DNA from: Pelomyxa schiedti
Taxonomy: Eukaryota > Protista > Evosea
NCBI GenBank assembly: GCA_020536535.1
Contig: JAHLWZ010000381.1
Span: forward strand, 1 to 64,000
Length of the DNA stretch: 64,000 nt
Direction: 5' to 3'
A program made the translations under genes and the position numbers. The notes under the pieces were generated by a model. It was not told where the DNA came from and searched no databases. It saw nothing but the letters and a program-made list of their open reading frames with translations. Shown here piece after piece: positions 1-20,702 of this stretch (the first letter of the stretch is position 1; each line of letters starts with the position of its first letter).

Positions 1-178
1 CTAACCTAAATCCACAACGGTGCTGTTCTCCTCATTCCATTTCCATGTGTACTTCGAACGCAATTTGTACTGAGGGTCTGAATACCTGGCCATTTCCAGA
101 TCCTGGAGATTACATTTGGCATTTAAATCAAATTCGGCCAGATTGTCGTACGAACGACAAAGGGTGCGATAGATCTCC

Positions 179-561
179 ATGGGGAAGTCTCTTCGAAACT
201 GTGAGTGCTTTCTGTCGAAAAACCTGTAAGAGTGACACTTTCCTTTTTTTTTTACAGGGAGCAAAACGGTGAAGACTCCTCGTCGGCCGTTTGAAAAGGA
301 GAGGCTGGACCACGAGCTTCGCCTTTGTGGTATAAATCCATACTTTTCATGGCACAAAGAATTGCAGCGAAGAGACTCACGTGAAACTAGGGGAGTATGG
401 GCTAAGATGCAAACGTGAGGTGTGGCGCGTTCATTATGCCCTGACAAAAATCAGAGGAGCAGCTCGAGAGTTGCTCAAACTTGACGAGATTGATCCAAAG
501 AGAATTTTCGAAGGCAATGCTATGCTTCGGTATATCATCACTTTCTTTTATTTGTCTATTT
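179..561 (+). CDS. RPS9: Partial second copy of 40S ribosomal protein S9 (uS4), truncated by an N gap; probably an uncollapsed allele of the 22637-23570 gene
   Basis: Spliced translation [60 protein letters not shown]. Bases 1-561 match 22458-23041 apart from synonymous SNPs and intron indels. Confidence 0.8.
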
Positions 562-661
562 NNNNNNNNNNNNNNNNNNNNNNNNNNNNNNNNNNNNNNN
601 NNNNNNNNNNNNNNNNNNNNNNNNNNNNNNNNNNNNNNNNNNNNNNNNNNNNNNNNNNNNN
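562..661. other. Scaffold gap (100 N)
   Basis: Run of 100 N. Confidence 1.
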
Positions 662-763
662 TGCACCCCGTGGCCGATGGTCTTGTAGAAAACGCCTTTT
701 TTTTCCGTCTCAGTTCCTCGTCTCTGGACTGAGAAAACTAATAAACCCGATAAAAAGTGTGCA

Positions 764-797
764 CACTTGGGCAGTCCCAACACTTGGGCAGTCCCAA
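764..797. promoter_or_regulatory. Tandem 17-bp dyad motif (CACTTGGGCAGTCCCAA x2) upstream of the eIF2-alpha-like gene
   Basis: Exact direct repeat; each unit contains the inverted pair TTGGG-N4-CCCAA; it ends 24 nt before the ATG at 822. A regulatory role is inferred only. Confidence 0.4.
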
Positions 798-821
798 TCG
801 TGGCGGCTATTTGTTGCGAGA

Positions 822-2459
822 ATGGCGGATGCATCGCCGTCGCGTGGTACCGTCGAGAGTGCGTCCCACAGCAGTTGTACAACCATTATGGGAGAGTCGT
901 CGCCTGATACGCGCACAGCTGTGGAGCCTCAGGGCGACACCAGATTCCGTGAGTGGGCCGAAGAAAACCGCCAACTATTGAATTGTCGTTTCTACGAGAA
1001 CGAGGTTTTGTGTTTTGGTTTTGGTTTTGGTTTTGGTTTTGGTTTTGGTTTTGGTTTTGGTTTTGTTTTTGGGATTCAAAAATATATCTTGAAACAAACT
1101 TTGCTGCAGTGGCCAGAGGTGGAGGAGTGCGTCTTGGCTACTGTTACTAGTGTTACTGATTTGGGTGCATTTGTGGAACTCCCGGTAGTTACCTGTTTTT
1201 TTTTTTTCCCCTGTGTGTTGTCTAACGACGGTTTGGCCAATCTTTGTTAGGAGTACAGTAATAAGGAAGCACTTGTCTTAATTTCTGAATCGGGCCGCAG
1301 GCGTTTTCGGTCGAACCCTTATCATGTTGGGGGTAAATTTGCGGGTTGTGTTCTGCGAGTCGATACAGAAAGAGGTATCATTAACACAGTATTCACTGCA
1401 CTCATTGTGCTTAGGTTACATTGACCTAAGCAGAAGACGAGTCACAGAAGATGATAAAGAACGATTACGGGATAGATATTTCATGTCAAAAATTGTTCTT
1501 GCTCTGTTCTGCGACTTTTCCTGATGATGGTTGTTTAGGTTCGCAAAATATTAGAGAGATTGGTATGTGGTTCATGTGAAATGAATAAATCTCACATTTT
1601 GGAAAGCTGTACTGTATTATCAGACCAACAAAAAGTGTAATTGCATTACTGTGCGGCCAACATCCAAGATGCGGTGCTAGCAGCCCTATCTTTGAGCTTC
1701 CTCTTCTTGTTATGCATCTAATAGCATCTTTTATGGGTCAAAGTAGTCCCTCATGATTCCTCAATAAGATTTTTAAGGTGTCCTTAGGTGGCATTACCCT
1801 TCTCCACATTTACCAACGTCACGTTTGGCCACTGAACACAATTTACAAGAACCCTTTCCTGGCCTTCCAACGAGCCATCATGTAATTTATCATTCAATGA
1901 TGAAGAAACCTAATAATTTTCCAGAGATCCAGCTGCAGCTTTCAAAGGTGTTGAAATCCCTAGTTCAACTCTCAATTCTTTGTCTTTGATACTTGCAGAG
2001 AATAAACGTCTCTTTAGTTCCATGGTATTCGCGTGTCGTTGCTGTTTTTGGCATTACTGTATTCAAGGTTGAGATGGACATTGACGTAACCTGCTTTGGG
2101 CCTACCGGCATTGATGGCCTCAAAGAGATCTTTCTTGCTGGCGAATCCTGCTCAATTCCGGCAGCAACAGTGCGAGTAATTTTACTTCTTATCATCCAAA
2201 ACTGAGTGGCAAAGATTCATATAATTAGCTCCCCTACCTACCGCATGATATCATACTCTCCAGATATTGAGCTGGCAAAAGCAACTCTGCAACGGGCTGT
2301 GGATGTTATGCAGAGTAAGATATACAATTATACACAGTCCAACCTCGAAATTAGGAGTGTATGTCTGTTGTCTACCACAAAAGCAAGATTAACACCATCC
2401 AGAAACCTCGAGTTACCATTATACCTCCAAGACTCTATGACGAGACCATCAATTTTTAG
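822..2459 (+). CDS. Divergent translation initiation factor 2 alpha (eIF2-alpha)-like protein, multi-exon
   Basis: Exons give CRFYENE|WPEVEECVLATVTSVTDLGAFVELP|EYSNKEALVLISESGRRRFRS (S1 domain), GYIDLSRRRVTEDD, IYQRHVWPLNTIYKNPFLAFQRAI and VEMDIDVTCFGPTGIDGLKEIFLAGESCS..KIHIISSPTYRM, collinear with all three eIF2-alpha domains. Confidence 0.85.
1013..1060. repeat. (TTTTGG)8 microsatellite in intron 1 of the eIF2-alpha-like gene
   Basis: Eight perfect hexamer units. Confidence 0.95.
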
Positions 2460-2607
2460 ACTAGATCCAAATTGTGGTGAGAAAAACTTTCTTTTATTTC
2501 CCACATTCTTCTTGGCAGTCAAGTCAATGAATCATCCCTTCCTCCTTCCTTCACTCAATCATGACAATGGTTTGGACCGGTTTAGACTCCCACTCTTCCC
2601 TCACTCT

Positions 2608-2898
2608 CTATGTCTCAACCTTGTCCTTCTCCTCCGTGTCCTTGTCAGCCTCTTTCATTTTATGGACCGCCTCTGAGACCCTCGAACCACCAAGCTTGCC
2701 CCTCTCGTGTGCGGTAAGTGGCTCATGAGCTTTTTGCTTCTCCAATATATCCTCTATAGCATGCTTCTCTCCACCCAACTCCTCTGCCCTTTGCGCCGCC
2801 TTGTAGGCCTTTCCGCCAAGCACCCCAGCTTCCTGTCGGCTCAGGGTCTCTCCAGATTCCTTCTTCTCTAGTATCTCTTGCACTTTTGGATCATCCAT
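2608..2898 (-). CDS. Small hydrophilic stress protein with two KGG/GsiB/LEA5-like motifs (start may lie further upstream)
   Basis: MDDPKVQEILEKKESGETLSRQEAGVLGGKAY...EPLTAHERGKLGGSR; highly charged, with two internal repeats resembling the EAGRKGG motif. Confidence 0.6.
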   Translation of the reverse strand: MDDPKVQEILEKKESGETLSRQEAGVLGGKAYKAAQRAEELGGEKHAIEDILEKQKAHEPLTAHERGKLGGSRVSEAVHKMKEADKDTEEKDKVET

Positions 2899-3337
2899 TT
2901 CTTCCCTACACAGCACCGCTCACAGATTGTCTGATGCTTACTTCTTGGCTGTTTGTTTTGTGGGCTAACTTGCTTGCTTTCTTCTTTACTCTCACCTTCT
3001 TCAACTAGTTGTTTGTCCTTAAGTGGTGTTGTTATTTTTCATTGTCTATTTGTCCCGTCTGCCACACAACCAGTAGTCACGTCATCTGTGCACTTTTTAA
3101 AACGATCAAAAGTTTTAACTGCAACTGATCGTTCCTCGAATCGGTTCTCTTGTCTTGGAAACAAAACAAAAAAAACCCAAGCCGTTCGGCAGTAGGCACC
3201 GCGACCTTCAAAAACAAAAGAAACAAAAAGTGCGTGTGGGTTATATCCGGTTTTTTGGTCCATGTTGTGTTTGTGTTTTTTTTTTTTTTTCCCTTTGAAC
3301 GATGTGACACAAACGGAGGTGACGTACCCACCCATAA

Positions 3338-3442
3338 TGCGCTGGAGATATCATTGCAATCCTCCTGTTCGTGTTTGCCTTCCTTGTTGCAGTTCTGGCT
3401 GTTCTTGGCTACCTTGCCCACCGATTCGCTGGCAAGGCCTAA
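3338..3442 (+). CDS. Candidate single-pass micro-protein (SMIM30-like), not in the ORF track; start unresolved
   Basis: Frame reads CAGDIIAILLFVFAFLVAVLAVLGYLAHRFAGKA*; ~22-aa hydrophobic helix followed by basic residues; preceded by an in-frame TAA. Confidence 0.35.
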   Translation, partial: CAGDIIAILLFVFAFLVAVLAVLGYLAHRFAGKA

Positions 3443-3834
3443 ACTCAAGACAAAACCAATCCCATAAGCACGCCAACCTAGTTGGTGCTGCCTTGTTTAT
3501 GCACTTGTTGGCTAGGGAGTACAACGTCCCTAAACCAGCCAAATGAAAACAAGTGGTACTAATAGATCTATGACAACGTGATAGACCATTGGCTTTTGTG
3601 GTTGGGACCAACGATCTCCGAGCTCGCACTACCAGGGGAGAAAATAGCAATAGCTCCTGCTCCAACTTAGTCATGCCCATTACATAGAACGGTGCACCTT
3701 TTTCAGTGTCGTTTCGGCGGCGTAAAAACGAAGATTCGGGCTACCGTCTGGCGGTTTTTTTAAAAAAAAATTAAGAAAACAAGCAACAAAACAAGCAAAT
3801 TAAACAAAACAACAAAAAACCTCGGCTTCGAAAC

Positions 3835-6800
3835 ATGGCAGCGAGTGAGAGGGGGGTGTTTAGCGACCACGTGTTTTTCCTTCTGGATCTTCCGGCTCCC
3901 AACAAAAAAAGTGTGACGCAAATCATACGAGACTATGGGGGAGAAGTCTCTTCGATGCCGTCAAAGATGGTGAGTGAAACGTTTTGGATTTTGTAGTAAG
4001 TTTTGAGTCTGAGTTGATTTGTTTAGGTTACACATGTTGTGGTTAGGCCTGATGATTTGAGCAGTAATTCATTCAAAGTTCAAGCGATTCTCAAAAAGAA
4101 CCCAGCAATGCAAGCTGTTCTCGAGACGTGGGTGCAAGATAAAACGAGAGGTGCCAGGAAGGTGGCACCAAAGCCAAAAGCTCCACCACCTCCACCTACA
4201 CCTGCCTTTGTTCCACCAGAGGATGACACTATGTCCATGATCAGTGTCAGGACAACTTCGTCAGTGGCTTCTTCCGCGTCTGCTCTTGCACAAGTTGTTC
4301 CAGCGAAACCTGTCCCAGTACCTACTGTAACAATGGTCTTGCCAACTTCAGGTTTTTTGGGAAAATAAACTGTAACCCGACTTATGCTCCACAGGGCCAA
4401 ATACTGGAGATTTCCGGCTTGCTCTTTTTGGTGTACACTTTAGACCAGGGCCAGGATTTAAGCTGAAAATAGGTTCCGTTACAGCAACGGAATACGAGTT
4501 CCATAGTAGCTCTTCTGTTATTGTAAATGTACCTCCTTGCACGTATGTTCCCTTCAATGCAACAATAAGTCTGAAAGTCTTTAGGGTGCCTCCCGGAACT
4601 GTTCCTATACACGCCACAAATGACAATGGGCGCCACTATGGTTTTCCAATGGAGTTCCGTTTTTATGGTATTTTGTTAAAAAAAACCTATTCCTTCCTCA
4701 CTAATGAATGAATAGATGCTGGTGCCGGCCAACTTTCCCAGTCAGTTGAACAAAAGGTTCTTGTGGGTGGTGAGTTCCTTCTACATTAACTTGCTGTCAG
4801 ATTGCCATTCTCCGTGGGCAGCTTACAAACGTCCGAAGGGCCATTTCTAATATCCAACAAACTGAAATCGATTTGAGGACGCAGCTTGCTCAACTCACTG
4901 ATTTGAAACTATTGGAAGAGCTGGAACCCGAGGAGGTTGAATATATCTTTTGTGTGGAGACTTTTTAAGGATTTTAGGTACCTCCTGAGCAAGCTGTGGC
5001 AGCTACAGAGAAACCGGCACCTCTTCGACATGAGGAGTTTGAGAGGGAAATTAGGATCTTCATTTCCAGTCCATTCAGGGACATGAAGGAGGAGCGAGAG
5101 AAGATTGTGTGTTGCTTGTATTTCCTTGTCTCAATTTCCTTACGTTTAACACCATCTACCATAGGTTAAACTTGTCATCCCCAAAGTACGCAAGTTATGT
5201 ATGTCATTAGATGTTGCTGTCAGCTATGTAGATCTAAGATGGTACCTTTTTACTTCTTTATTTTGTCTCACGTTTCTTTTTAGGGGTGTCACTGGGGCGC
5301 AAAGTGAGCAAGCCACTATGCTTTTGATGTGTCTAAGAGAAGTTGCCAAGTCAAATGTATTTGTGGGACTTTACGGGGAGCGTTACGGATGGGCAATTTC
5401 CAATGAGGGTGACACAAGTAACAACGACCTTCTAAGTCGCTCCTTTGATCTTGCTGCACGTGAATTCCCGTGGATTAACGAATACAGGGACAGAAGTGTT
5501 ACTGAACTCGAGATGCGAATGGTACTGGTTTCTATACTGCTTTGCCATGTTCTGATCGTAATCAGCTTCTTGGGCATAAATATGATGGTTCTAATAAACC
5601 TGCATGGTTCTATCTCCGTGATCCGTATTTCATCGAAGAAGTACCCAAAGAGCAAAGACATCTCTTTGTGTCTGAAGGCCCAACTGCAAGTAGAAAGTTA
5701 TCCACACTCAAGACAGATGTGCATAAAGCTGGACATCCTGTAAAGGACTACCTTCGAGCTGATCAGATGGCCGAATTTATGTTTGAGGACTTAAAACAAT
5801 ATGTTGCTAAGAAGTATCCCGAGGTTGACCTACATTTTATCACTCTGAAATTGACCTGTTCCCAGGGTATGTCACTCAGTGACGAAGAACGTGAAGACCT
5901 CCGACATAAGCTCACTTCGCGAAACCTCACCCGTGTATACCTACCAAATGAAAGTAACTTCCTGGAACTTGACAAATTTGTCTCAAGTGAGAAGGAGTTA
6001 CCTATGGTCATTGTTGGAGGGGTAGGGAGCAACAAATCCCTCTCCCACATTTAATATGCACATAGGGTGGCAGCGGCAAGTCTGCTTTGATGGCCAACTG
6101 GGTGATGAGACACAAGGTACTCAAATAATCATTTTCTCGTTAATATGATAAGGAGCACCACCCCGAAGACGTAATTGCATTACACTATGTAGGCTGTTCG
6201 CCAGCATCAACGAATTATGCTTTCTTGCTTGGCAGGCTTATGCGGCTGGTACACGCCACTTTTACCACAGTGAAATTTACTCCATTAGATATCAGAACAA
6301 CTTGGTGCCGCTGTCGATCTTCCATCTGATCAAAGCAAAACCCCTCTTGCATTTGTTACCTGGCTTTCCAACCTTTCAGTAGTAAATGTCAACAACCGCC
6401 GTATTGTGAGTTTTCTTCTCTTGCGCTTTTATCCAACTAAATTATTCAGATTGTGGTTATCGATGGTCTTAATAAGTTGGATGAACGAGATAATGCGCAA
6501 GAATTATTGTGGTTCCCTCAGTAAGCCAATATTGTCATCTTTATATGCGTTCTTAGTTTTCAAAAGAACTTTCCCGAGGTTCATGAGTGTCATAGTAACA
6601 ACAGCTCCGATCCAAAGGATTGCGCATACCCTCAAAGTACCAAAGCCTTCCTTTGGTATTCAATTTACGCTTTGTAGAAACGCAACTGCCCAACAATGGA
6701 CCTTGCTCTACTTGAGGAAGCAGAGCGCAAATCTTTTGTCCGAATGTACTTGAACCAGCGTGCAAAGAAGTTATCTGATCAGCAAGAATTTATGATTGCT

Positions 6801-9793: not shown

Positions 9794-12700
9794 ATGGCGT
9801 CAACGGGCGGGTGCTGCGTGCTGCTGTGCGTGGGTAGTGTGGACACAAAAAAGAAGGCAAGGAGTCAACTGCGTGAGTGTGTCAACAAAGTGAAAGGCTT
9901 CACCACAAGTTTCGTCTTCGGCCCAAAGGTCCGTGCGTGCTTTGGTTGTGTTTTTTTTTGGTTTTTTTGTTTTGTTTTTTGTGTTTTGGTTTTTTGCTTT
10001 TGGTTGTCTGTGATCATGTTAATTTTTTTTTCTCTTGGTTGTGTGGACTGCACAGGTGACACACGTAGTCGTTGACGATGTCGGCTGGAGGATATTTTCT
10101 ATTTCTCCAAGGAAGATTGACTTGATAAAGAGATTGCGGATACACGTGGTGAGTTGGATGTTTGAAATTTCCGGAATCTTGTTAGCCACCTTTTTTTTAC
10201 GACTCTATTTGAATTAGGTTACACCTGCCTTTTTAGATGCCTGTACATCAAATAGCAGAATTATGGAATGCTCAGATTTTGTGTATAATACTGTGAAGGA
10301 GGTTGTACTGAGCACAGAACCTCAGATATACTTGCCACCACAAGAACCAGACCCTGTACCTCCTGCGCCTGCTGCCTCCAGGGATACTTATATTCGAAGG
10401 GAAGTCATTGTTCCCTACAAATCCAAAGATGACCCTTTTAATGAAGCGGGTGCCTGGCTCGTTCAACACCATCTACTGCAAAAGCCATCATGGTTAGATC
10501 ATTTTCGTTTCTAAGTATCCCTCTTTTCTAATTCGTTTCTAGCTTGGTGAAACTAGAATTGCATACCCGCAGCTCTTCTGATAATGCTTGGCGTGTGTAT
10601 GAAGAAGTTGTGCCATGCCTTTCCACTGTGCCACCACAGACAAATACTCAGGGGAAATCAAAAAAGACCATCTCCCAACCAACACACAGGAGGCTGAGCC
10701 ATCTCTTAGCCTCGGCCTCAGAGGCTATTTCTGTGTACTCCGCTCTCTATGAGAATTATACCAACGTTGAAGGCTACACCCGCGTTGGAATACCTCCGTT
10801 TTCTTCCTTGGGATCAGATTTGGTATATGCTTCTCCAACGTTCTTTTTTTAACTATTAAAAGATAGGTAATGGATTAAGTCCCGGGTCTGTTCTTCCTGC
10901 AATGATATCACAGCTTGTGCAAGTCATTTTTAACGGTCAGTGATGATAGAACTCTGTTTTCGAATAACATTTTTCAGCTTCATCTTCTAAGTTTGCTGGC
11001 TTGAATACTATGACACTGGATATATCATTAGACACTCTAAATGAGGCAGAGGCTATTCTATGGTCCCTGCAAGAGCTTAGCCTTTCCAATCAACAAGGCT
11101 CTCCGAAATTCATTGAGGTATGGCACTTGAACTCGATCTTTCTCTGTGTAAATTATTTTAACAGCTAAATGATAAACTTTCCTCGTTGCTCCCATTTAGT
11201 GATCAGCACATAACCTCAAATGAAGCATTGCTTGAGAAATATGAGTTCATCCAAACTCTAAAAGATTCTCTTTGCCTGAATGAAGGTACCCACTAAACGT
11301 GCATATTTAAGCTAATTTTCACCAGGGATCACACTTCCAGGCAGTTCTGTACAGTCCAACTCCATCATAGATATGCATTACCGCAGTCTCAATTGTCGTT
11401 TGGAATATACAGATGATCCTGCTGTGAGAGAGCTAACTTCCCGTGTCCAAGCCTCTCTAACATCAGCCCCTACCTTGCTACACGTGGAACATGTGTTTCA
11501 TGTTGCGCGCCCTTCGGAAAATGAAGTCTTTTCTAATGTGGGTAATGTGAAACTTCTATTTCACGGTACCAAAGTGGAGCGGGTAGCTGGTATTCTTTCA
11601 CATGGACTGGTTTTACCAAAGGTTTCCCTCAAAGCAATTCGATCTATTTTCTCAGTGCCTTAGGTTTCTGTAACTAAACTTGGAATCAAGAGAGTGGATG
11701 CTGGCCAACTTGGGGTGCACATTTGTTTCGTTTAGTTTCGTTTTACATGCCCTACAGAATGGTATATACTTTGCAACAGATGCCGCTGTAAGTGCTAAAT
11801 ACTGTAACTCTTTTGGGGAAACGTCGTTCCTATTGGTGGCTTCAGTTTCCTTAGGCAAATCTATGGATACACCAGCTCCACGAGTAGGAACCACTGCCGA
11901 CACTTTACCCAACGGGTATCTGGAAATTCGAAGGGAATTTATTCTCTAATATGTTTCTTCAGATTCCACAGTGTGCACTCCATCCCGAGGCATACCGACC
12001 CCAACTCGGCCTTCGAGGATGAGGAATTCTGTGTACCTCTCCCAATTTGTGAAACTGCATCATGACCACCGACAGGTATTTGATAGCCGACAAATAATCC
12101 TGGAATACATTATCCAACTTACAAAAGCCCCTAAATCAATACCATCAACACTACCAATGCCGTCTTTTCCACAAGTTTCAATCTCTGATCCAACCACCGC
12201 CCCAGACGATCTGAAGTCTATTTTTCTTGCACCACCTTCTCTCAGCGTTTCACCCACGAAAAAGCAATCTCCTGTATACCCGGTTTTGATTGGTCAAGGC
12301 GGAGTACGTTTTTCAGTTGAAAGTACAACTGTGGCAGCCAGAATACTTGATTTAGTGGCTGAAGTTGTAGTTATTCAACATTTTAGCAATACTGGCGTTG
12401 TAGCTTGTGAAGCGAAGTATATATGCCCAATAGATAGCCATGGTTGTATATCTGCCCCCACAATACTCTAACCTCTCCTAGCTGCTGTTTGTGCTTTCGA
12501 ATGTTACATAAATGACAAGCATGTAGTGGCACACATAGAAGAAAAAGGTCTTTTTCTTTTTTTATTGTGCCAATTGAAACAATGTCAAATATTAGGTAAG
12601 GCTCGAAAAGAATACAAAGAAGGTACACGTTTGTGCTTGACTTTTTTGTAACTTATAAGAATACAGCAATTGAGCAAGGGCATGGAGCGTAGGTAAGCCA

Positions 12701-15700
12701 GATTCCTTCTACTTCTTTACCTCTATTAGGTATTTACTCGAAGAAGAATCCCCAGATGCATGGTGCATGTCTCTTGGAAATCTTCCAGGCATATCTTGCC
12801 ATGATGTTCTTACTTCCTCTTATTCTTCAAAGCAAACGCCGAAATTGTTGTTAAAATTACATATGTGGAAGACCTGGCTTTAGCATCTAATGGGGTAAGT
12901 CCGTCAAAAGTAGTGAAATTTGTGTCTAATCAACAATACTCAGATTACCTTTACCTTACCTGCGGCTCTTGCCGGCCGTGAGGACCGTCTCAATAGTGTA
13001 ACAACAACCCAAACGGCAGTTGCAACAGTTATCAAAGTATGCTCCAAACAACTAGGGTAGGTATCTCATTTAGTCAGGCTCATTCCAGCGCGCCGTCATT
13101 CCATTTGGAAGCGGGAATTACTATGCCCTATGACATCACTGGCATCACTTCACCATCTCATTTGAAAGATGTTCAAGTGAAACACACCAACACAAAGGCA
13201 ACTGTCAGGGCTTTAATGACGGAACTTACAGCAGACTTTGTACTACTTATTTCTATCAAGAACGCCCATGAACCCCGAATGTGGTTGGAAGTAAAGGACT
13301 CATCTCTACTGCTTTTTACTTAACACTTTCAGGTGGATGATACACAAAACTGGGCAGCGATGATTTCTATATCCCCAGATTTTCAAAATTATATACAGTC
13401 TGCCTGTCAGAGCAGATCTGAGGTCATATTCGTGGTTGACAGGTCCATAAGCATGGCCTCCAATCTTGCAACTTTACGTTGGGCTCTTCAGGTAATCAGA
13501 TGGATGATTTTGCACTCTCACGAAACTCAGATACTCATATCCCAACTGGGAAGTGAGGATATGTTTAATGTAGTTGGATTTGGATCCCACTTTGAGTCGT
13601 TATTTGTACAGTCGCAATCTGCAACTTCCGCCAAACCTGTCGGGTACAGATATGCCCAAATGTTACAAGCCACCTTTGGGGGTACTTCCCGTCACCATAC
13701 CTCCCTCCCCAAGCTTAATCACCTTTTTCAACAGGCACAAATCTTTACTCTGTTCTCAGAGCAGTGTTTTCTCTTGGTCAATCCAATGACTTCTCTTCAA
13801 GAACAGTAATCCTTCTCACTGATGGCCTTTTTGACATTTTTCCCGTATTGCCCATAGTGAAAAGGTGGAGAGACTCCTTGTATCTCAGTATTAAATCTGT
13901 TTAGTGCCCGGGCTCACACCAAACTATTTACTGTTGGAATCGGGGAGGCATCCAGGCATTCTATTTGCACCCTTGCACGGATAGGTGGGGGATGCTGTCA
14001 GTTCGTTCCATCCAATCCCTCACCCAAACATGAGAAACTGTTGAATCACATGTTAGCACAACGAAATCAAAATGTGGCTTCCCTAAATTTGGAACATTCT
14101 TATACTGTTTTAGACTTTATCTGGTATAAACATCAAGTGGCACACAACACACACAATTAAGCAAGTACCCTCTGAAATTTACAATATGTTTCAGAATCAG
14201 GTTTTCCTCCAAGACTAGTTTTCCTTTTTCTAACACATTAAAGTCTTATACTATTTATGGTCTCCTTAGTGGCATATGTAACCAGGTGTCAATTCAGGGG
14301 AATATCGGAGCACAGTTTTACCCTCACCCAATAAATTAGTGGTAATCGAGAGCAGGGAGTTTTCCACAACAGTGTCATCAAGTGAACTTACTGCTACACA
14401 TGGCACATTGATTCACAAACTGGCAGCCAGAGAGCTTATTCGAGATTGGGGGGAAAATTCTCTCCACGAACAGGATACAGAGCACTTTGTACAAAAAAAT
14501 AATATGGTTTCAGATGTTATTGCTCTAAGTAAAAAGTATGGATATCAAAATACAAAAATGGAGTTAGGATAGTAATATACTACAAAAAGGTATGGCTTCA
14601 TCACTCCTTTTACTTCTTTTGTGGCAGTGGAAGAGAGAAACCGTAATGACGCCTTAGTTTTGAAAGCACCTTCAGTGAAAGAGATTGTATCAGAGTCTAA
14701 ATTTTTGTACTTCCTTTGACTGCCAACAGCTGCAAGGCCATGACGTCGATGAAATCAAAGAAATTGCTTGGGAGCATGACCTTGAACCAGTCCCAAAGAA
14801 GGACGAACTTCAGAAACAACGAGATTCAAATTCCTTTTCCATTGCTCTTTATGGTGACCCACAGACTGGTATAAAAACTCACCCACACTTTTACCTCCTA
14901 AGACATCTCAAGGTAAAACAGCTTGGCTAAAACGCATGGTTTTTCCTTCAAATTTGCAACCCAATCCCCATTTATACAACTACAGCTGAGCGGGGAGTTT
15001 GAGCACAAATACATTGTAACCCAGGAGCCAGAGCAATTCAAACTGACTCTAAGTACAAATCGAGGTGCTATCCACTTTAATTTGTACGACATGCCTGGTG
15101 TAGCTACCAGCACAGCAACCCCTCCTACTGCCCATGATGGTAGTATAGTCTTCTTTGACGTTACTTCTCGCGCGTCATATAAAAATCTGCCCATCTGGTA
15201 CATGAAGGCTGGAAGCACTTCCGGTTCACCTACAAGTCCAGTTGTTGTATTTGTTGGCAATAAAGTGGACTGCTCAGAACGGAAACTTCATGCTCGACAA
15301 ATTGTCTTTCATAAGAAAAAGGTATTGGCTCTCCTTTCTCAAGTGTCTTCCTGATTGCCAATTTAGAATTGCAAGTACTATGACCTAAGGTACCTCCTTT
15401 TATGATATCCACTCTTAAGTATTTACTCTTTAGTGTTAAATCTTCGTACAACCTGGAGTCACCTCTACTAAGTCTTGCCCGGTCCCTTTTATGGTTGTGC
15501 ACAATCCTTCTCCCTGAATTTAATTCTTCTCAGTGACCCACAATTGGAGTTTGTTCAAGAAGTGGCACTTGCTCCACCTGAAGTAACTTTGGATCAGGCA
15601 TTAATAAAGAGGTGGGAACAGGATTTAGCTGATGCAGCATCAATCCCCCTTCCCGATGAGGATGATGACTTTGGAGGCACTGTTCCATCCAGTGCTGTCG

Positions 15701-17971
15701 CTCCTCAGCATGCAGTGCCGTCCAGTACCTTTGATTTCGCTCTCCGACCAAGCAAAGAAAAAAGTGCACCAGGTCCAACAGGCTTTTTCAGTCAATCTGC
15801 TACAGTTCCATCTGTGCAAGCTTCTGTTACCCATTCAGTACCATCTCTTTTTAGCTCTCCAGTTGCACCTTCCTTTAATTTCGCTTCACAAGCCACTACC
15901 TCTCGAGGGTTATTTTCTCCCCAAGGACAAGTGACGTCAACTCAACCTTCTCCTCTATTTGGCGCACCTCTGCCCTCCTATACTCCACCGGCCCCGTCAC
16001 CTTTTGGTAGTTCTTCATCATTGTTTTCTGGCAGTTCGTTTGGATCTCAACCACAACCTTCTACCGCTGCATTTGGCACTGCAAGCACTTCTTCACTTTT
16101 TGGCGGATCCCAACAGGTACCTGCCTCGAGTGGGGGCGCTGTGAGTGCGTTTGGAGCTCTAGCATCTCCTACTTCCGTTTTTCCACAGGCATCATTTGGC
16201 ATGGCAAGCCCTGCAATGTCCACTACAATCCCTGCAGCCACTTGTTGTCTGCCGTCCATCTTTCCTGCAGCCAGTTCTACTACTTCCACTCTCTTTTCTG
16301 CACCACAAATATTTCCCTCGGCCGCATCTTCCACAGCACAGTTGTTCCCAGCGCCTCAATTGTCCTCTTTCCCAACATTCAGTCTACCGGCCACTCCTGC
16401 AGCCAGTTGTACGTCCACCTTCAGTCTACAGGCCTTTCCTGCAGCCAGTTCTACTACTTCCACTCTCTTTTCTACACCACAAGTATTTTCCTCTGCACCA
16501 ACTTCCGTAACGGCGTTGCCGCCGGCGCAGCAATTACCGTCTTCCGCCACTTTTGCTCCACCCACTACTCCACAGCTCAGGTCTCCACATCCTGGGACTG
16601 GAACAATTTCATTTGCAGCTGCCAGAGCGCGAAGCAAGGCATTTCAAAATAGGAAACACTCTGAATCAGATATTAGTAATACAAGCAAGTCTTCAATTGA
16701 CCCTCCCTTGCCTCCGTTCTGCTGCCGTGCTTGTTGCAGCCCCTCCACACTCAGTGATTCCCAATTGCAGTTTGTACTTAAGGGACCTAAGAATACGAAG
16801 AGGATCTGGGGTGTGTGCTGGATGGATGCCGTTCTTGCATTAGCATCAACCTTGTCACCTTTACGTGACTGGGCATGTTGTACTAGGAACGGAGAACCTC
16901 CTATTGGCTATGCTGGCAGCTTACTTGAGTGTATCACATCATTTTTCCGCTGTTGGATGTAAGTAATTCATCAACCTATCAATGTTTCAACCCCTTAAGA
17001 TCTGAGGACGTAGGAAGTGTAACTTACAATAAGTATCTGAATACGACACACAAACGCACAGCAAGCAAATTTTCCGATCTCGGATTCGCCGAAGGAAAGC
17101 CACAGTGCGTTGTCAAGGCACTCAATTGCTTGATTGAGGAAGCTTCACTATTTATTACAGAGGTAGGTAGAACATTCATGCTTTCCCTTACAAGCATGAC
17201 TGTACAGGTACGAGACATTATTACTGTGCCCTCCACAAATCTTGGGGAGATCCTCACACGTAAATTGGAACAAATAATTCCGCAAATAATCACAATTTCA
17301 GAGTTTACTGTTGCAAGTGCACCTCCAAAGTGGATCATATGTATAAATAGTACATGCAGGAAGATACCTCGTACCACTTTATACCAATACAAGCTAGGTC
17401 TAATTTGATTTTGATAGGGATACCAGACGATTGTGCCTATGTTTTGCATTCTTTCATTGTATTTGAACCCATTGGGAAGTATTTTGACATGCCGGTGAAT
17501 CACTTTGTTACCGTATCCCCCGACCAGAAGGGCTACTGGATATACGATGATCTGTTGTGCCTCACTCCTGGAGGTCTGTGCTCCCCGCACCATGCTTTCC
17601 ACACAGTCGATTCTAATGCCGTAACAACAACAGAATGGCAAGGCGGATTCTGTTCGTGGGACTCTCCGGACAGTACCCAAACATTCAAGAAACTCCGTTC
17701 CAAAGTTCCTGTGAGCACTCCTGATCCCAACCAACACCCTTCTCATGCCAACACATATAATGACCAAACATTAGGTTTTCATTCTACGGCACCAAGATGT
17801 CCCTTGGCCACCAACAAGTACCTACCAGGCTCCTCGTTTGCGCTCCGAACAGTTCTCACAGTACTGAACTCCAACATTCTAAGCATAAAACAGAGAAGCA
17901 TAAAGTTTCGTTTTTTTTTCATGTACACATTCCACACGGCCAAGACACAAAATCTGGTCCGTTCAGAATAA
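9794..17971 (+). CDS. PARP4 (vault PARP)-like protein fused to a Ran-like GTPase, an FG-rich region and a USP-fold (USPL1-like) isopeptidase; 3' end approximate
   Basis: BRCT (GPK|VTHVVVDD), PARP (LLFHGT, GIYFA, AFEDEEF), VIT (AEVVVIQHFSN..EAKYICPID), vWA (IFVVDRSISM), PARP4-like FTSFVAVEER..DVDEIKEIAW, then Ran motifs, FG repeats and Cys/His boxes. The domain junctions lie inside exons. Confidence 0.8.
11373..12120 (+). other. PARP catalytic domain with an intact H-Y-E triad
   Basis: KLLFHGT (His), GIYFATDAAVSAKY (Tyr), FHSVHS..NSAFEDEEF|..QIILEYII (Glu); resembles the human PARP4 motif DFEDDEFVVY..VKMKYII as I recall it. Confidence 0.85.
14830..15670 (+). other. Ran-like small GTPase domain including the C-terminal acidic tail
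   Basis: GDPQTGKT (spliced), LSGEFEHKYIVT, TNRGAIHFNLYDMPG, FDVTSRASYKNLPIW, GNKVD, IVFHKKK|NCKYYDLSVKSSYNLE, DPQLEFVQEVALAPPEVTLD..LPDEDDDF; colinear with Ran throughout. Confidence 0.9.
16260..16488 (+). repeat. Internal ~55-bp direct repeat (16260-16314 and 16434-16488) in the S/T/P/A-rich linker
   Basis: CTTTCCTGCAGCCAGTTCTACTACTTCCACTCTCTTTTCT(G/A)CACCACAA(A/G)TATTT occurs twice, 174 nt apart; encodes FPAASSTTSTLFS(A/T)PQ. Confidence 0.9.
16780..17650 (+). other. USP-fold cysteine isopeptidase domain (C19/C98, USPL1-like)
   Basis: Cys box GPKNTKRIWGVCWMDAVLALASTLSPLRDW (Cys 16816); His box YVLHSFIVF..VNHFVTVSPDQKGYWIYDDL (His 17501, Asp 17546); linked by GT-AG introns that preserve frame. 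Confidence 0.65.
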
Positions 17972-18356: not shown

Positions 18357-20702
18357 ATGAAGGGCAAAAAGGGTAGCAGCGGCCACAGTGGAAAGACGAC
18401 CAAGTCTACGTCGACTACGTCTACGTCCACAACCACGTCATCGTCGTCCACCACATCCAAGAGGAAGAGGCCGAGACACGACGCTCGCGAGGAGGNNNNN
18501 NNNNNNNNNNNNNNNNNNNNNNNNNNNNNNNNNNNNNNNNNNNNNNNNNNNNNNNNNNNNNNNNNNNNNNNNNNNNNNNNNNNNNNNNNNNNNNNAGCAG
18601 CGGCCACAGTGGAAAGACGACCAAGTCTACGTCGACTACGTCTACGTCCACAACCACGTCATCGTCGTCCACCACATCCAAGAGGAAGAGGCCGAGACAC
18701 GACGCTCGCGAGGAGGAGGAAGAGGAGGATGACATCATGGTCGACACAGACTCCCCTCACTTGAAAAGTGCGTTGTCGTTGGGGTTGTTTGTTTTTTTTT
18801 TTTTTTTTTCCCTTTTCCCTTTTTTTCCCCCATTATTCCCCCCTTTTTTTAACCATCTCAACAAGTATGGTTTGGTTCTCGTATTTTTTTTTATTTACCA
18901 CTAGTACGATGTTCTTAAATATTTTTTCTTTTCCCTATTAATGTAGTTTAGGGTTGATTCAGGAAGAATACAAGTTATGGAAGAAAAATGCCCCATTTTT
19001 GTACGATATTGTGATTACCCATGCTCTTGAATGGCCATCCAACACTATATCTTGGTTACCAGACAAAATTGAGTGCGTTGCATTTTTTTTTTTTTTTTTT
19101 CTCCCTTTCTTGAATAACAAAACCCTCAACAACAGTACGAAAGATCGGGCAATTACCGAGAAAAGATTGCTACTTGGAACTCTTACAAATGGAACAGACC
19201 AGAATTATCTCATGCTTGGCAGAGTTAAACTTCCCAACGAAAGTTTACAAACTGAATCTGACCGGGAAGGTAGGTGCTTTACGACCTCTTTTTATGGTGT
19301 AATTTAGGTTTGTTAGATTACAGAATGGTCTCAGACAGAATTGAAATTTTTCAGAAAATTCGCCATGATGGTGATGTGAACAGGTAGTGGGAGTCTGTTA
19401 ATTGACCTAATCCTTGACCAGAGCCCGCTCTATGCCACAAAATCATCATCTGATTGCAACCAAGTCCTCCCTCTCGGAAGTGACTATTTTCGATACATCC
19501 AAACATACCGTAACCACCGAACCACCAGGGAAAGTGAAACCACAAATACGGCTTGGCGGTCACACAAAAGAAGGGTCTGTTACTGTGGCAGAATTTCTTT
19601 CCTTACAGTGTCAAGATACGGGCTTGCATGGAACCCAATAAGAAGTGGGATGTTGATCAGTGGTTCAGAAGATTGCTTGATTTGCATGTGGGATATAAAT
19701 GCACGCTCTGCAACACAACCAGTATCACCGAGTAACATATTTAAAGGACACTCTAGTGCTGTGGAGGTACTCCTGTGGATTTTTGGCTCCTAACAAACCT
19801 TGATAACATAAATGCAGGATGTTGCGTGGCATGTAAAACAAGAACATGTTTTTGGATCAGTAGGAGACGATAAACAACTTTTAATGTTGGTATTTCCCTC
19901 CCTCTCGCTTAGCATTTCCACCTGACATACCTCCTAAAAGGTGGGACATAAGAGAGCCAAGTAGATTCGTTCAATCTGTAGTGGCTCATAAAATGGATGT
20001 TCATAGTATTGCTTTCAATCCATTTTGTGAGCACCTCCTTGCTACCTCTTCCGCTGATAAGGTTTGAACAGGAAACTTGAACTTATTATTAAACATTCTT
20101 CCAGACCGTTGCTCTTTGGGACCTTCGTAATCTCAAATCCAGACTTTACGAGCTAGTTGGGCACAGCGATGAAGTTCTTCCTATCGCCTGGTCACCTCAC
20201 TGCGAGTCTGTGATAGGTTCTGCTGGTAGAGACAGGTTTATTTCTCTTTACTACTTTACAAGGCTTTTACCGGAATCACCAGACGTTTGCATGTGTGGGA
20301 CCTCAGCAGAATCGGAGACAAGCAAACCGCCGAAGAAGCAGCAGACGGACCGCCCGAGCTTTTGGTAAGAGTGCATTTGTCCTCATTTGTTCTGATTGCT
20401 GTTGCTAGTTCATTCATGGAGGTCACACTGGCTCCGTGGTCGATTTTGCCTTCGACACCCGTGATCCGTGGCTTATGTCATCAGTCGCGGAAGGCAACAT
20501 TCTTCAGACGTGGAAGATGGTATCTCATCCAACCCGTCGCCCTTCTAATCATTCATTCCACTTACCGATGCTCCTACAGGCTGAGACTATTTTTTCTGAG
20601 TGTGCCTTTACCACCCTTTCACCTGCCCCCACATCAACCGCCTCAACAACAAGCACTAGCACCACCACATCAACAAGTGCCGCAGCAAAGAAAGGTACCT
20701 GA
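18357..20702 (+). CDS. RBBP4: Histone-binding WD40 protein RBBP4/RBBP7/MSI1 family, with Ser/Thr-rich termini
   Basis: [59 protein letters not shown]|[29 protein letters not shown]|FIHGGHT. Exon 1 is interrupted by a gap with a duplicated flank. Confidence 0.93.
18376..18715. other. Scaffold gap (18496-18595) with an exactly duplicated ~120-bp flank (assembly overlap artefact)
   Basis: 18376-18495 is repeated at 18596-18715 across the 100 N. Confidence 0.9.

Follow-up and report, generated by a model that had tools for sequence, protein, structure and literature searches.

Ubiquitin-specific protease (USP)-fold enzymes are among the best-catalogued protein families, and most of them, but not all, carry a CxxC...CxxC zinc ribbon in the fingers subdomain. 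In the SUMO-specific member USPL1 the catalytic triad is Cys236-His456-Asp472, the catalytic His is followed by Phe457 where ubiquitin USPs have Tyr, a tyrosine occupies position 451, both blocking loops are deleted, the four-Cys zinc finger of the fingers subdomain is essential for activity, and SUMO is contacted by Arg324, Phe335, Met330, Ser332, Asn398, His421, Tyr451, and His493 (PMC8983731). A second relevant group is the PARP4-like (clade 5) proteins of amoebae, which carry appended 14-3-3, actin, or "ubiquitin-related" domains and belong to a clade that is expanded in Amoebozoa; the survey that described them was based on SMART and Pfam and did not report a protease domain (Perina et al. 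2014, PMC4245714). Here we describe the C-terminal domain of a PARP4-like protein of the anaerobic amoeba Pelomyxa schiedti, whose genome has 7.4 introns per gene, 98% of them GT-AG (PMC8887013). The gene lies on a 64,000-nt stretch (contig JAHLWZ010000381.1, positions 1 to 64,000 of the forward strand; hereafter, the window). The domain is probably a cysteine isopeptidase with the USP fold (clan CA, thumb-palm type), compact and highly divergent, and belongs to a small unnamed family that sits C-terminally on PARP4-like proteins. We regard this family as a new and divergent branch of a known fold, present in a new PARP4 fusion, and its best reading from sequence and structural models is a predicted ubiquitin/ubiquitin-like (Ubl) isopeptidase tethered to an ADP-ribosyltransferase.

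The host gene is represented by a deposited public spliced model (P0001, 2087 amino acids), which was returned by our HMMER search and was used for all Pelomyxa alignments. Comparison of P0001 with the window by tblastn, together with Pfam analysis, gave the following placement:

9794 to 17867, + strand: whole gene P0001, encoding a weak BRCT domain, the PARP catalytic domain, VIT, VWA, Ras (Ran-like), an FG/Ser-Thr-Pro-rich linker, and the USP-fold domain

Pfam matched PARP (2.8e-22), VIT (1.6e-31), VWA_3 (7e-14), Ras (1.9e-17; the Ran-like module), and, weakly, BRCT (0.0055), and the modules occur in the order BRCT-PARP-VIT-vWA-Ran-like-FG-rich linker-USP-fold domain. A PARP catalytic domain in mid-protein, preceded by BRCT and followed by VIT and vWA, is the layout of the PARP4 (vault-PARP, clade 5) group. 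No Pfam family matched the last ~650 residues, the final ~270 of which (about residues 1815-2087) constitute the new domain. The end of the Ran-like domain is joined to the Cys box of the new domain, by way of the FG/Ser-Thr-Pro-rich linker, within one unbroken exon (open reading frame 15475-16962).

The two catalytic motifs that an earlier sequence-only reading (the original prediction) had proposed, GVCWMDAVL with its Cys at 16816 and NHFVT..WIYDDL (17501/17546), were read directly from the sequence and are in frame in P0001. The Cys codon (TGC, 16816-16818) lies in frame 1, the His codon (CAC) of the box VNHFVT occupies 17501-17503, and the two Asp codons of WIYDDL occupy 17546-17551 in frame 2. 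The Cys box and the His/Asp box share one reading frame in spliced P0001, with the His box neither removed nor frameshifted by splicing, and the predicted triad is Cys1838, His2008, and Asp2023. The proposal that the fragments are joined in frame by GT-AG introns was correct as to frame and splice-site type; six short introns (41-64 nt), not two, interrupt the domain, all with GT-AG ends, and each split codon was checked against the genomic sequence. The domain also continues past 17650, where it had been thought to end, to the stop codon. Its parts are as follows:

16747 to 16958, + strand: domain exon 1, the 3' end of the long Ran-like/FG-linker exon, with the Cys box LQFVLKGPKNTKRIWGVCWMDAVLALASTL and Cys1838 at 16816-16818
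16959 to 16999, + strand: intron of 41 nt, GTAAGT...TTAAG, with split codon AT/A for Ile1885
17000 to 17162, + strand: domain exon 2, thumb helices, SVTYNKYL...KFSDLGFAEGKPQCVVKALNCLIEE, which aligns to SIYFRKEL...KFDSLGFVKGASQCAIEGFECLLQK of the relative P0004
17163 to 17207, + strand: intron of 45 nt, in frame and stop-free, the removal of which gives a gap-free alignment with relatives
17208 to 17259, + strand: domain exon 3
17260 to 17301, + strand: intron of 42 nt, in frame and stop-free, with split codon C/AG for Gln1957
17302 to 17370, + strand: domain exon 4, FTVASAPPKWIICINSTCRKIP
17371 to 17417, + strand: intron of 47 nt
17418 to 17573, + strand: domain exon 5, with the His box, YVLHSFIVFEPI...VNHF, and His2008 at 17501-17503
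within 17418 to 17573, + strand: the Asp box GYWIYDDLL of domain exon 5, with Asp2023 at 17546-17548 and Asp2024 at 17549-17551
17574 to 17633, + strand: intron of 60 nt, in frame and stop-free, containing LCSPHH (17577-17594), with no insertion in relatives at this point
17634 to 17710, + strand: domain exon 6, (E)WQGGFCSWDSPDSTQTFKKLRSKVP, comprising the QGG loop particular to the family and then a helix
17711 to 17774, + strand: intron of 64 nt
17775 to 17867, + strand: last exon, VFILRHQ..., the final beta strand of the domain and then a short tail, with stop codon TGA at 17865-17867

The final strand is conserved among the relatives as VP[IVL]FIL. Because the intron at 17574-17633 is in frame and stop-free, its status is decided only by the relatives and the deposited model; across this point the relatives all have the uninterrupted sequence ...YDDLL.L.PGG[WYF]QGGF..., and the Pelomyxa protein after splicing has ...YDDLLCLTPGEWQGGF.... 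LCSPHH, which had been put forward as a third coding motif, falls within this intron. The introns at 17163-17207, 17260-17301, and 17574-17633 (45, 42, and 60 nt) are all multiples of three and stop-free; retention of any of them would add 14-20 residues with the frame intact, and the open reading frame track is therefore misleading here. A model with introns at 16959-17065 and 17350-17417 was ruled out by comparison with the deposited model and the relatives, both of which indicate shorter introns and two additional ones.

Relatives of the domain were sought by an exhaustive HMMER search of 1.84 billion proteins with the last large exon alone as the query, which yielded P0001 and 10 true relatives (E 1e-6 to 1e-3). 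The complete domain is present in three of these: P0008 (316 amino acids), P0010 (439 amino acids, with an FG-like N terminus), and P0004 (504 amino acids, with a 14-3-3 N terminus). When the Pelomyxa domain was compared by tblastn with these three full relatives (nucleotide sequences L005, L006, and L007), it aligned over ~275 residues at 32-36% identity (E 1e-33 to 1e-42). That one exon alone finds 10 relatives and the whole domain gives such E-values indicates that the motifs are more than chance. A profile search added P0013-P0018, and a metagenome scan added L009-L011. All members come from Logan, JGI, or ENA assemblies, on contigs of 26-59% GC content, and are unnamed or labeled "hypothetical". 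The word-index protein search retrieved nothing with exon 1, only the query itself with P0008, and only family members or fragments, all "hypothetical", with the family profile A4. Giant-virus and other viral contigs contained no relative of the domain, and the P. schiedti genome contained no paralogue, only an 850-bp haplotig. P0010 begins with an FG-repeat-like tract (L005:191-700; Nucleoporin_FG, E 0.2) that echoes the Pelomyxa FG-rich linker, and a short motif, ILSPFGF, occurs just upstream of the domain in P0004 (residues ~235-245) and P0010.

The family alignment defined a signature that begins LTHVL.GP.N....G[TSV]CW[LM][DN]A.L, continues with [FY][RN]K...W..F...GF..G, and then reads Y.LHS.I.FE.I....NH[FY]......GY.IYDDLL.L.PGG[WYF]QGG[FY]......VP[ILV]. 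Overall identity within the family is only 30-40%, and the Cys, the His, and the Asp-Asp pair are strictly kept: the catalytic Cys is found in all six of the sequences that cover its position, and NH[FY] and YDDLL in every sequence that covers theirs. The Pelomyxa gene structure and a family with invariant Cys, His, and Asp are thus direct observations. The alignment contains no conserved cysteine besides the catalytic one, and the loop PGG[WYF]QGG[FY], which is invariant, flexible, and family specific, follows directly after the catalytic Asp (window 17568-17650; P0008 residues 241-250).

Structures were modeled with the family alignment for two relatives, P0008 and the P0004 domain taken from L007, with a predicted local distance difference test score (pLDDT) of 74 and a predicted template modeling score (pTM) of 0.76 for the first and values of 81 and 0.82 for the second. 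Foldseek comparison with the Protein Data Bank (PDB) returned 78 matches for P0008 and 191 for the P0004 domain at E<=1e-3, and all of the matches listed were USPs. An independent structure scan of 48,161 representatives listed USP-fold proteins in its 36 leading rows with either model, with USP12 (16.8), USP5 (16.7), and USP14 (16.5) for the second, and aligned about 215 residues at a root-mean-square deviation of 3.4-3.9 A. Both models adopt a thumb-palm(-fingers) fold, and this can be superposed on the catalytic domains of USPs with solved structures. In P0008, C43 begins the helix 43-53, H220 lies in the strand 216-227, and D237 follows the strand 232-236; C35, H213, and D228 of the P0004 domain are placed likewise. 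In both, helix alpha1 starts with the catalytic Cys, the His is part of a beta strand, and the first Asp stands at the end of the strand that follows; this spacing of 15-17 residues between His and Asp on consecutive strands is the USP arrangement. The predicted structures thus show the USP fold for two relatives. Together with the in-frame splicing of P0001 and the conservation within the family, they support the earlier claim of an intact Cys/His/Asp triad in a USP-fold domain fused to a PARP.

When compared with canonical USPs (MEROPS C19, PF00443; USP12/USP46, USP14, USP18, USP5), the family likewise has its Cys at the N terminus of helix alpha1 and its His and Asp on neighboring strands, and it shares the sequence patterns Y.L.S.I, ahead of the His, and W/Y..[YF]DD..L, around the Asp. 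It differs from them in its Cys box (CW[LM][DN] versus C[YF].N), in its His box (NH[FY] versus GHY), in the PGG[WYF]QGG loop after the Asp, which is specific to the family of the Pelomyxa domain, and in lacking both a PF00443 match and a profile-profile match to P. schiedti USPs. The Cys and the His are separated by only about 170 residues, and the absence of conserved cysteines at the USP zinc-ribbon site indicates that the finger region is reduced and zinc-free. TssM of Burkholderia pseudomallei, a USP-like deubiquitinase (PDB 8PZ3, 8SSI), is in contrast a bacterial effector of unrelated sequence with another domain context.

The reduced, zinc-free fingers, together with an oxyanion-hole Asn that could not be placed, would fit a USP-fold module without catalytic activity, as in PAN2 or USP39/Sad1, that serves solely to bind a partner protein, ubiquitin, or a Ubl. 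We judge such a module to be distinctly unlikely, because retention of the Cys, His, and Asp-Asp in every member at 30-40% identity is unexpected for a pseudoenzyme and the catalytic residues occupy the canonical structural positions. The same strict retention favors an active enzyme over a pseudo-USP. A further scheme draws on the invariant Gly-Gly-containing flexible loop that adjoins the active site and on the Gly-rich linkers upstream: a cis-acting, PLpro-like processing protease could cut its own giant protein, for example at Gly-Gly in the FG/Gly-rich linker or in the GG[WYF]QGG loop. To this we assign only the slightest chance.

Several results weigh against assignment of the Pelomyxa domain as a USP-fold isopeptidase. 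The AlphaFold models represent relatives rather than the Pelomyxa domain itself and were derived from shallow alignments (11 and 18 rows), the PGG[WYF]QGG loop was of low confidence in both, and the loop before the catalytic Cys was poorly modeled. The splice junctions and the PARP-to-USP fusion rest on genomic sequence, the deposited model, and the relatives. A comparison of the Peptidase_C98 and UCH hidden Markov models, which the original prediction had suggested as a means of choosing between them, was run and favored neither, as both failed to match at E<=10, exon by exon or on the four full-length members P0001, P0004, P0008, and P0010. No Pfam protease model of any kind matched full-length members at this threshold. 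Six-frame searches of the P. schiedti genome (52,367,397 bases, 5337 contigs) gave 130 PF00443 matches elsewhere and none at this locus, and PF15499 also missed the locus, its sole genomic match (E 3.3) being on another contig. Searches of PDB sequences retrieved no USP with P0008 or with the clean family profile A4, and hhalign against three canonical P. schiedti USPs gave a probability of 0.2%, which is not significant. A PDB search with profile A2, dominated by the 14-3-3 part of P0004, likewise retrieved no USP. Two weak signals speak for a USP. In PDB searches with the exons the only match was an insignificant one (E 0.87) of exon 1 to the USP21 Cys box, Cys on Cys, and in separate ESM-Atlas feature searches with exon 1 and with exon 5 UCH was the only family named, a weak lead. 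By sequence, membership of the domain in Pfam UCH (C19) or Peptidase_C98 (USPL1) cannot be demonstrated.

The original prediction had identified the domain as USPL1-like, that is, as a SUMO-type isopeptidase, and several features speak for this reading. The Cys box has CW after a glycine, the domain is as compact as USPL1, and in Pelomyxa and most family members the catalytic His is followed by Phe, as in USPL1 (Phe457) and unlike the Tyr of ubiquitin USPs (PMC8983731). USPL1 chains (PF15499; PDB 7P99, 7ZJU) ranked fifth for the first model and second for the second by Foldseek E-value, and had the best target-normalized template modeling score for the first (0.54). Structure prediction with Foldseek, another of the proposed checks, supported the fold and not the kinship, as the nearest solved structures were ubiquitin or ISG15 USPs rather than USPL1. 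The residue after the His is not a fixed feature of the family, since P0002, P0005, and L010 read NHY there in place of NHF, and by simple spacing the domain lacks a Tyr five residues before the His. PF15499 matched nowhere among the exons and members searched, the cysteines for the essential four-Cys zinc finger of USPL1 are not conserved, and LCSPHH, the supposed third shared motif and presumed counterpart of the region around His493, lies in an intron. That the domain is a genuine USPL1 (Peptidase_C98) relative, representing a SUMO-specific USP older than animals, is consequently highly improbable, and neither a special kinship with USPL1 nor SUMO specificity was demonstrated for the family. 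The NHY members, the missing zinc-finger cysteines, the intronic LCSPHH, and the lack of a PF15499 match point instead to a separate, very divergent USP-fold branch.

The PARP4-type neighborhood of the domain recurs outside Pelomyxa. The AT-rich eukaryotic contig L007 (Logan SRR25885115, positions 1-4515) encodes PARP, VIT, VWA, and 14-3-3 followed by the domain, all in the same orientation and within 4.5 kb. In L008 (JGI metagenome) the domain follows VIT-vWA on the same strand, 3.7 kb downstream, with low-complexity coding sequence between them. These layouts indicate that a PARP4-type core with a C-terminal USP-fold domain recurs with a variable adaptor between the two. Pelomyxa has the Ran-like module plus FG-rich linker in this position, L007 has 14-3-3, and L008 has a low-complexity tract. 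The domain thus ends PARP-VIT-vWA (PARP4/vault-PARP-like) proteins in three or more eukaryotes that are unrelated to one another and either uncultured or poorly sampled. Compared with the described PARP4-like proteins of Amoebozoa, the BRCT/PARP/VIT/vWA core is the same, as is the appended 14-3-3 of L007, whereas the C-terminal USP-fold domain and the Ran-like and FG-rich insertion of Pelomyxa are not described there (PMC4245714). L007 represents the PARP4-like-14-3-3 type known from amoebae, plus a previously unseen protease-like end. Because the domain is invisible to Pfam, a survey based on Pfam and SMART could not have seen it (PMC4245714). The P. schiedti genome also has three loci with the major-vault-protein shoulder domain (G000:C352:7606-7944, C810:40381-40783, and C516:26265-26676), so vault components coexist with the PARP4-like gene, and VIT domains occur at 25 or more loci.

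For the preferred USP-fold isopeptidase, the predicted activity would be removal of ubiquitin or a Ubl modifier, with ubiquitin assumed by default since the closest structures are those of USPs acting on ubiquitin or ISG15. Its tether to the ADP-ribosyltransferase may allow both activities to work on the same substrates or on the host protein. The family could also be a dedicated partner of PARP4-type enzymes, a USP-fold hydrolase acting on an ADP-ribosylation-coupled modifier, or represent a second case in which a USP independently turned to a modifier other than ubiquitin, such as SUMO; we consider such specialization unlikely. A dedicated partner might act on ubiquitin or a Ubl attached to ADP-ribosylated targets, or on ubiquitin esterified to ADP-ribose, and the Ran-like and FG-rich modules of the Pelomyxa protein might bring it to nuclear-transport or vault-type assemblies.

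The predicted isopeptidase domain was missed by both Pfam USP models and by profile searches and was recognizable by its fold only. Its repeated place at the end of PARP4-like proteins would constitute a hard-wired link from ADP-ribosylation to ubiquitin/Ubl removal. Crosstalk of ubiquitin with ADP-ribose is an active topic, and the function of PARP4 and vaults is still poorly understood. The assignment also corrects the tempting reading that the SUMO-specific USPL1 occurs in Amoebozoa, and a Pfam model built from the family would allow its annotation in other protist proteomes.

Other features of the assembly were also noted. The 850-bp contig G000:C3323 (L003) is a 96%-identical copy of the 3' end of the gene, matching the window at ~17624-17932, and is most likely an uncollapsed haplotype rather than a paralogue. 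Downstream of the gene, a 100-base run of N (18496-18595) lies between perfect 121-nt direct duplicates (18375-18495 and 18596-18716) in what looks like a scaffolding overlap artifact. This duplication at 18375-18716 falls within the first exon of the + strand gene that follows; this exon is Ser/Thr-rich, and the later ones (from ~18954) resemble an RbAp48/RBBP4-type WD40 histone-binding protein.

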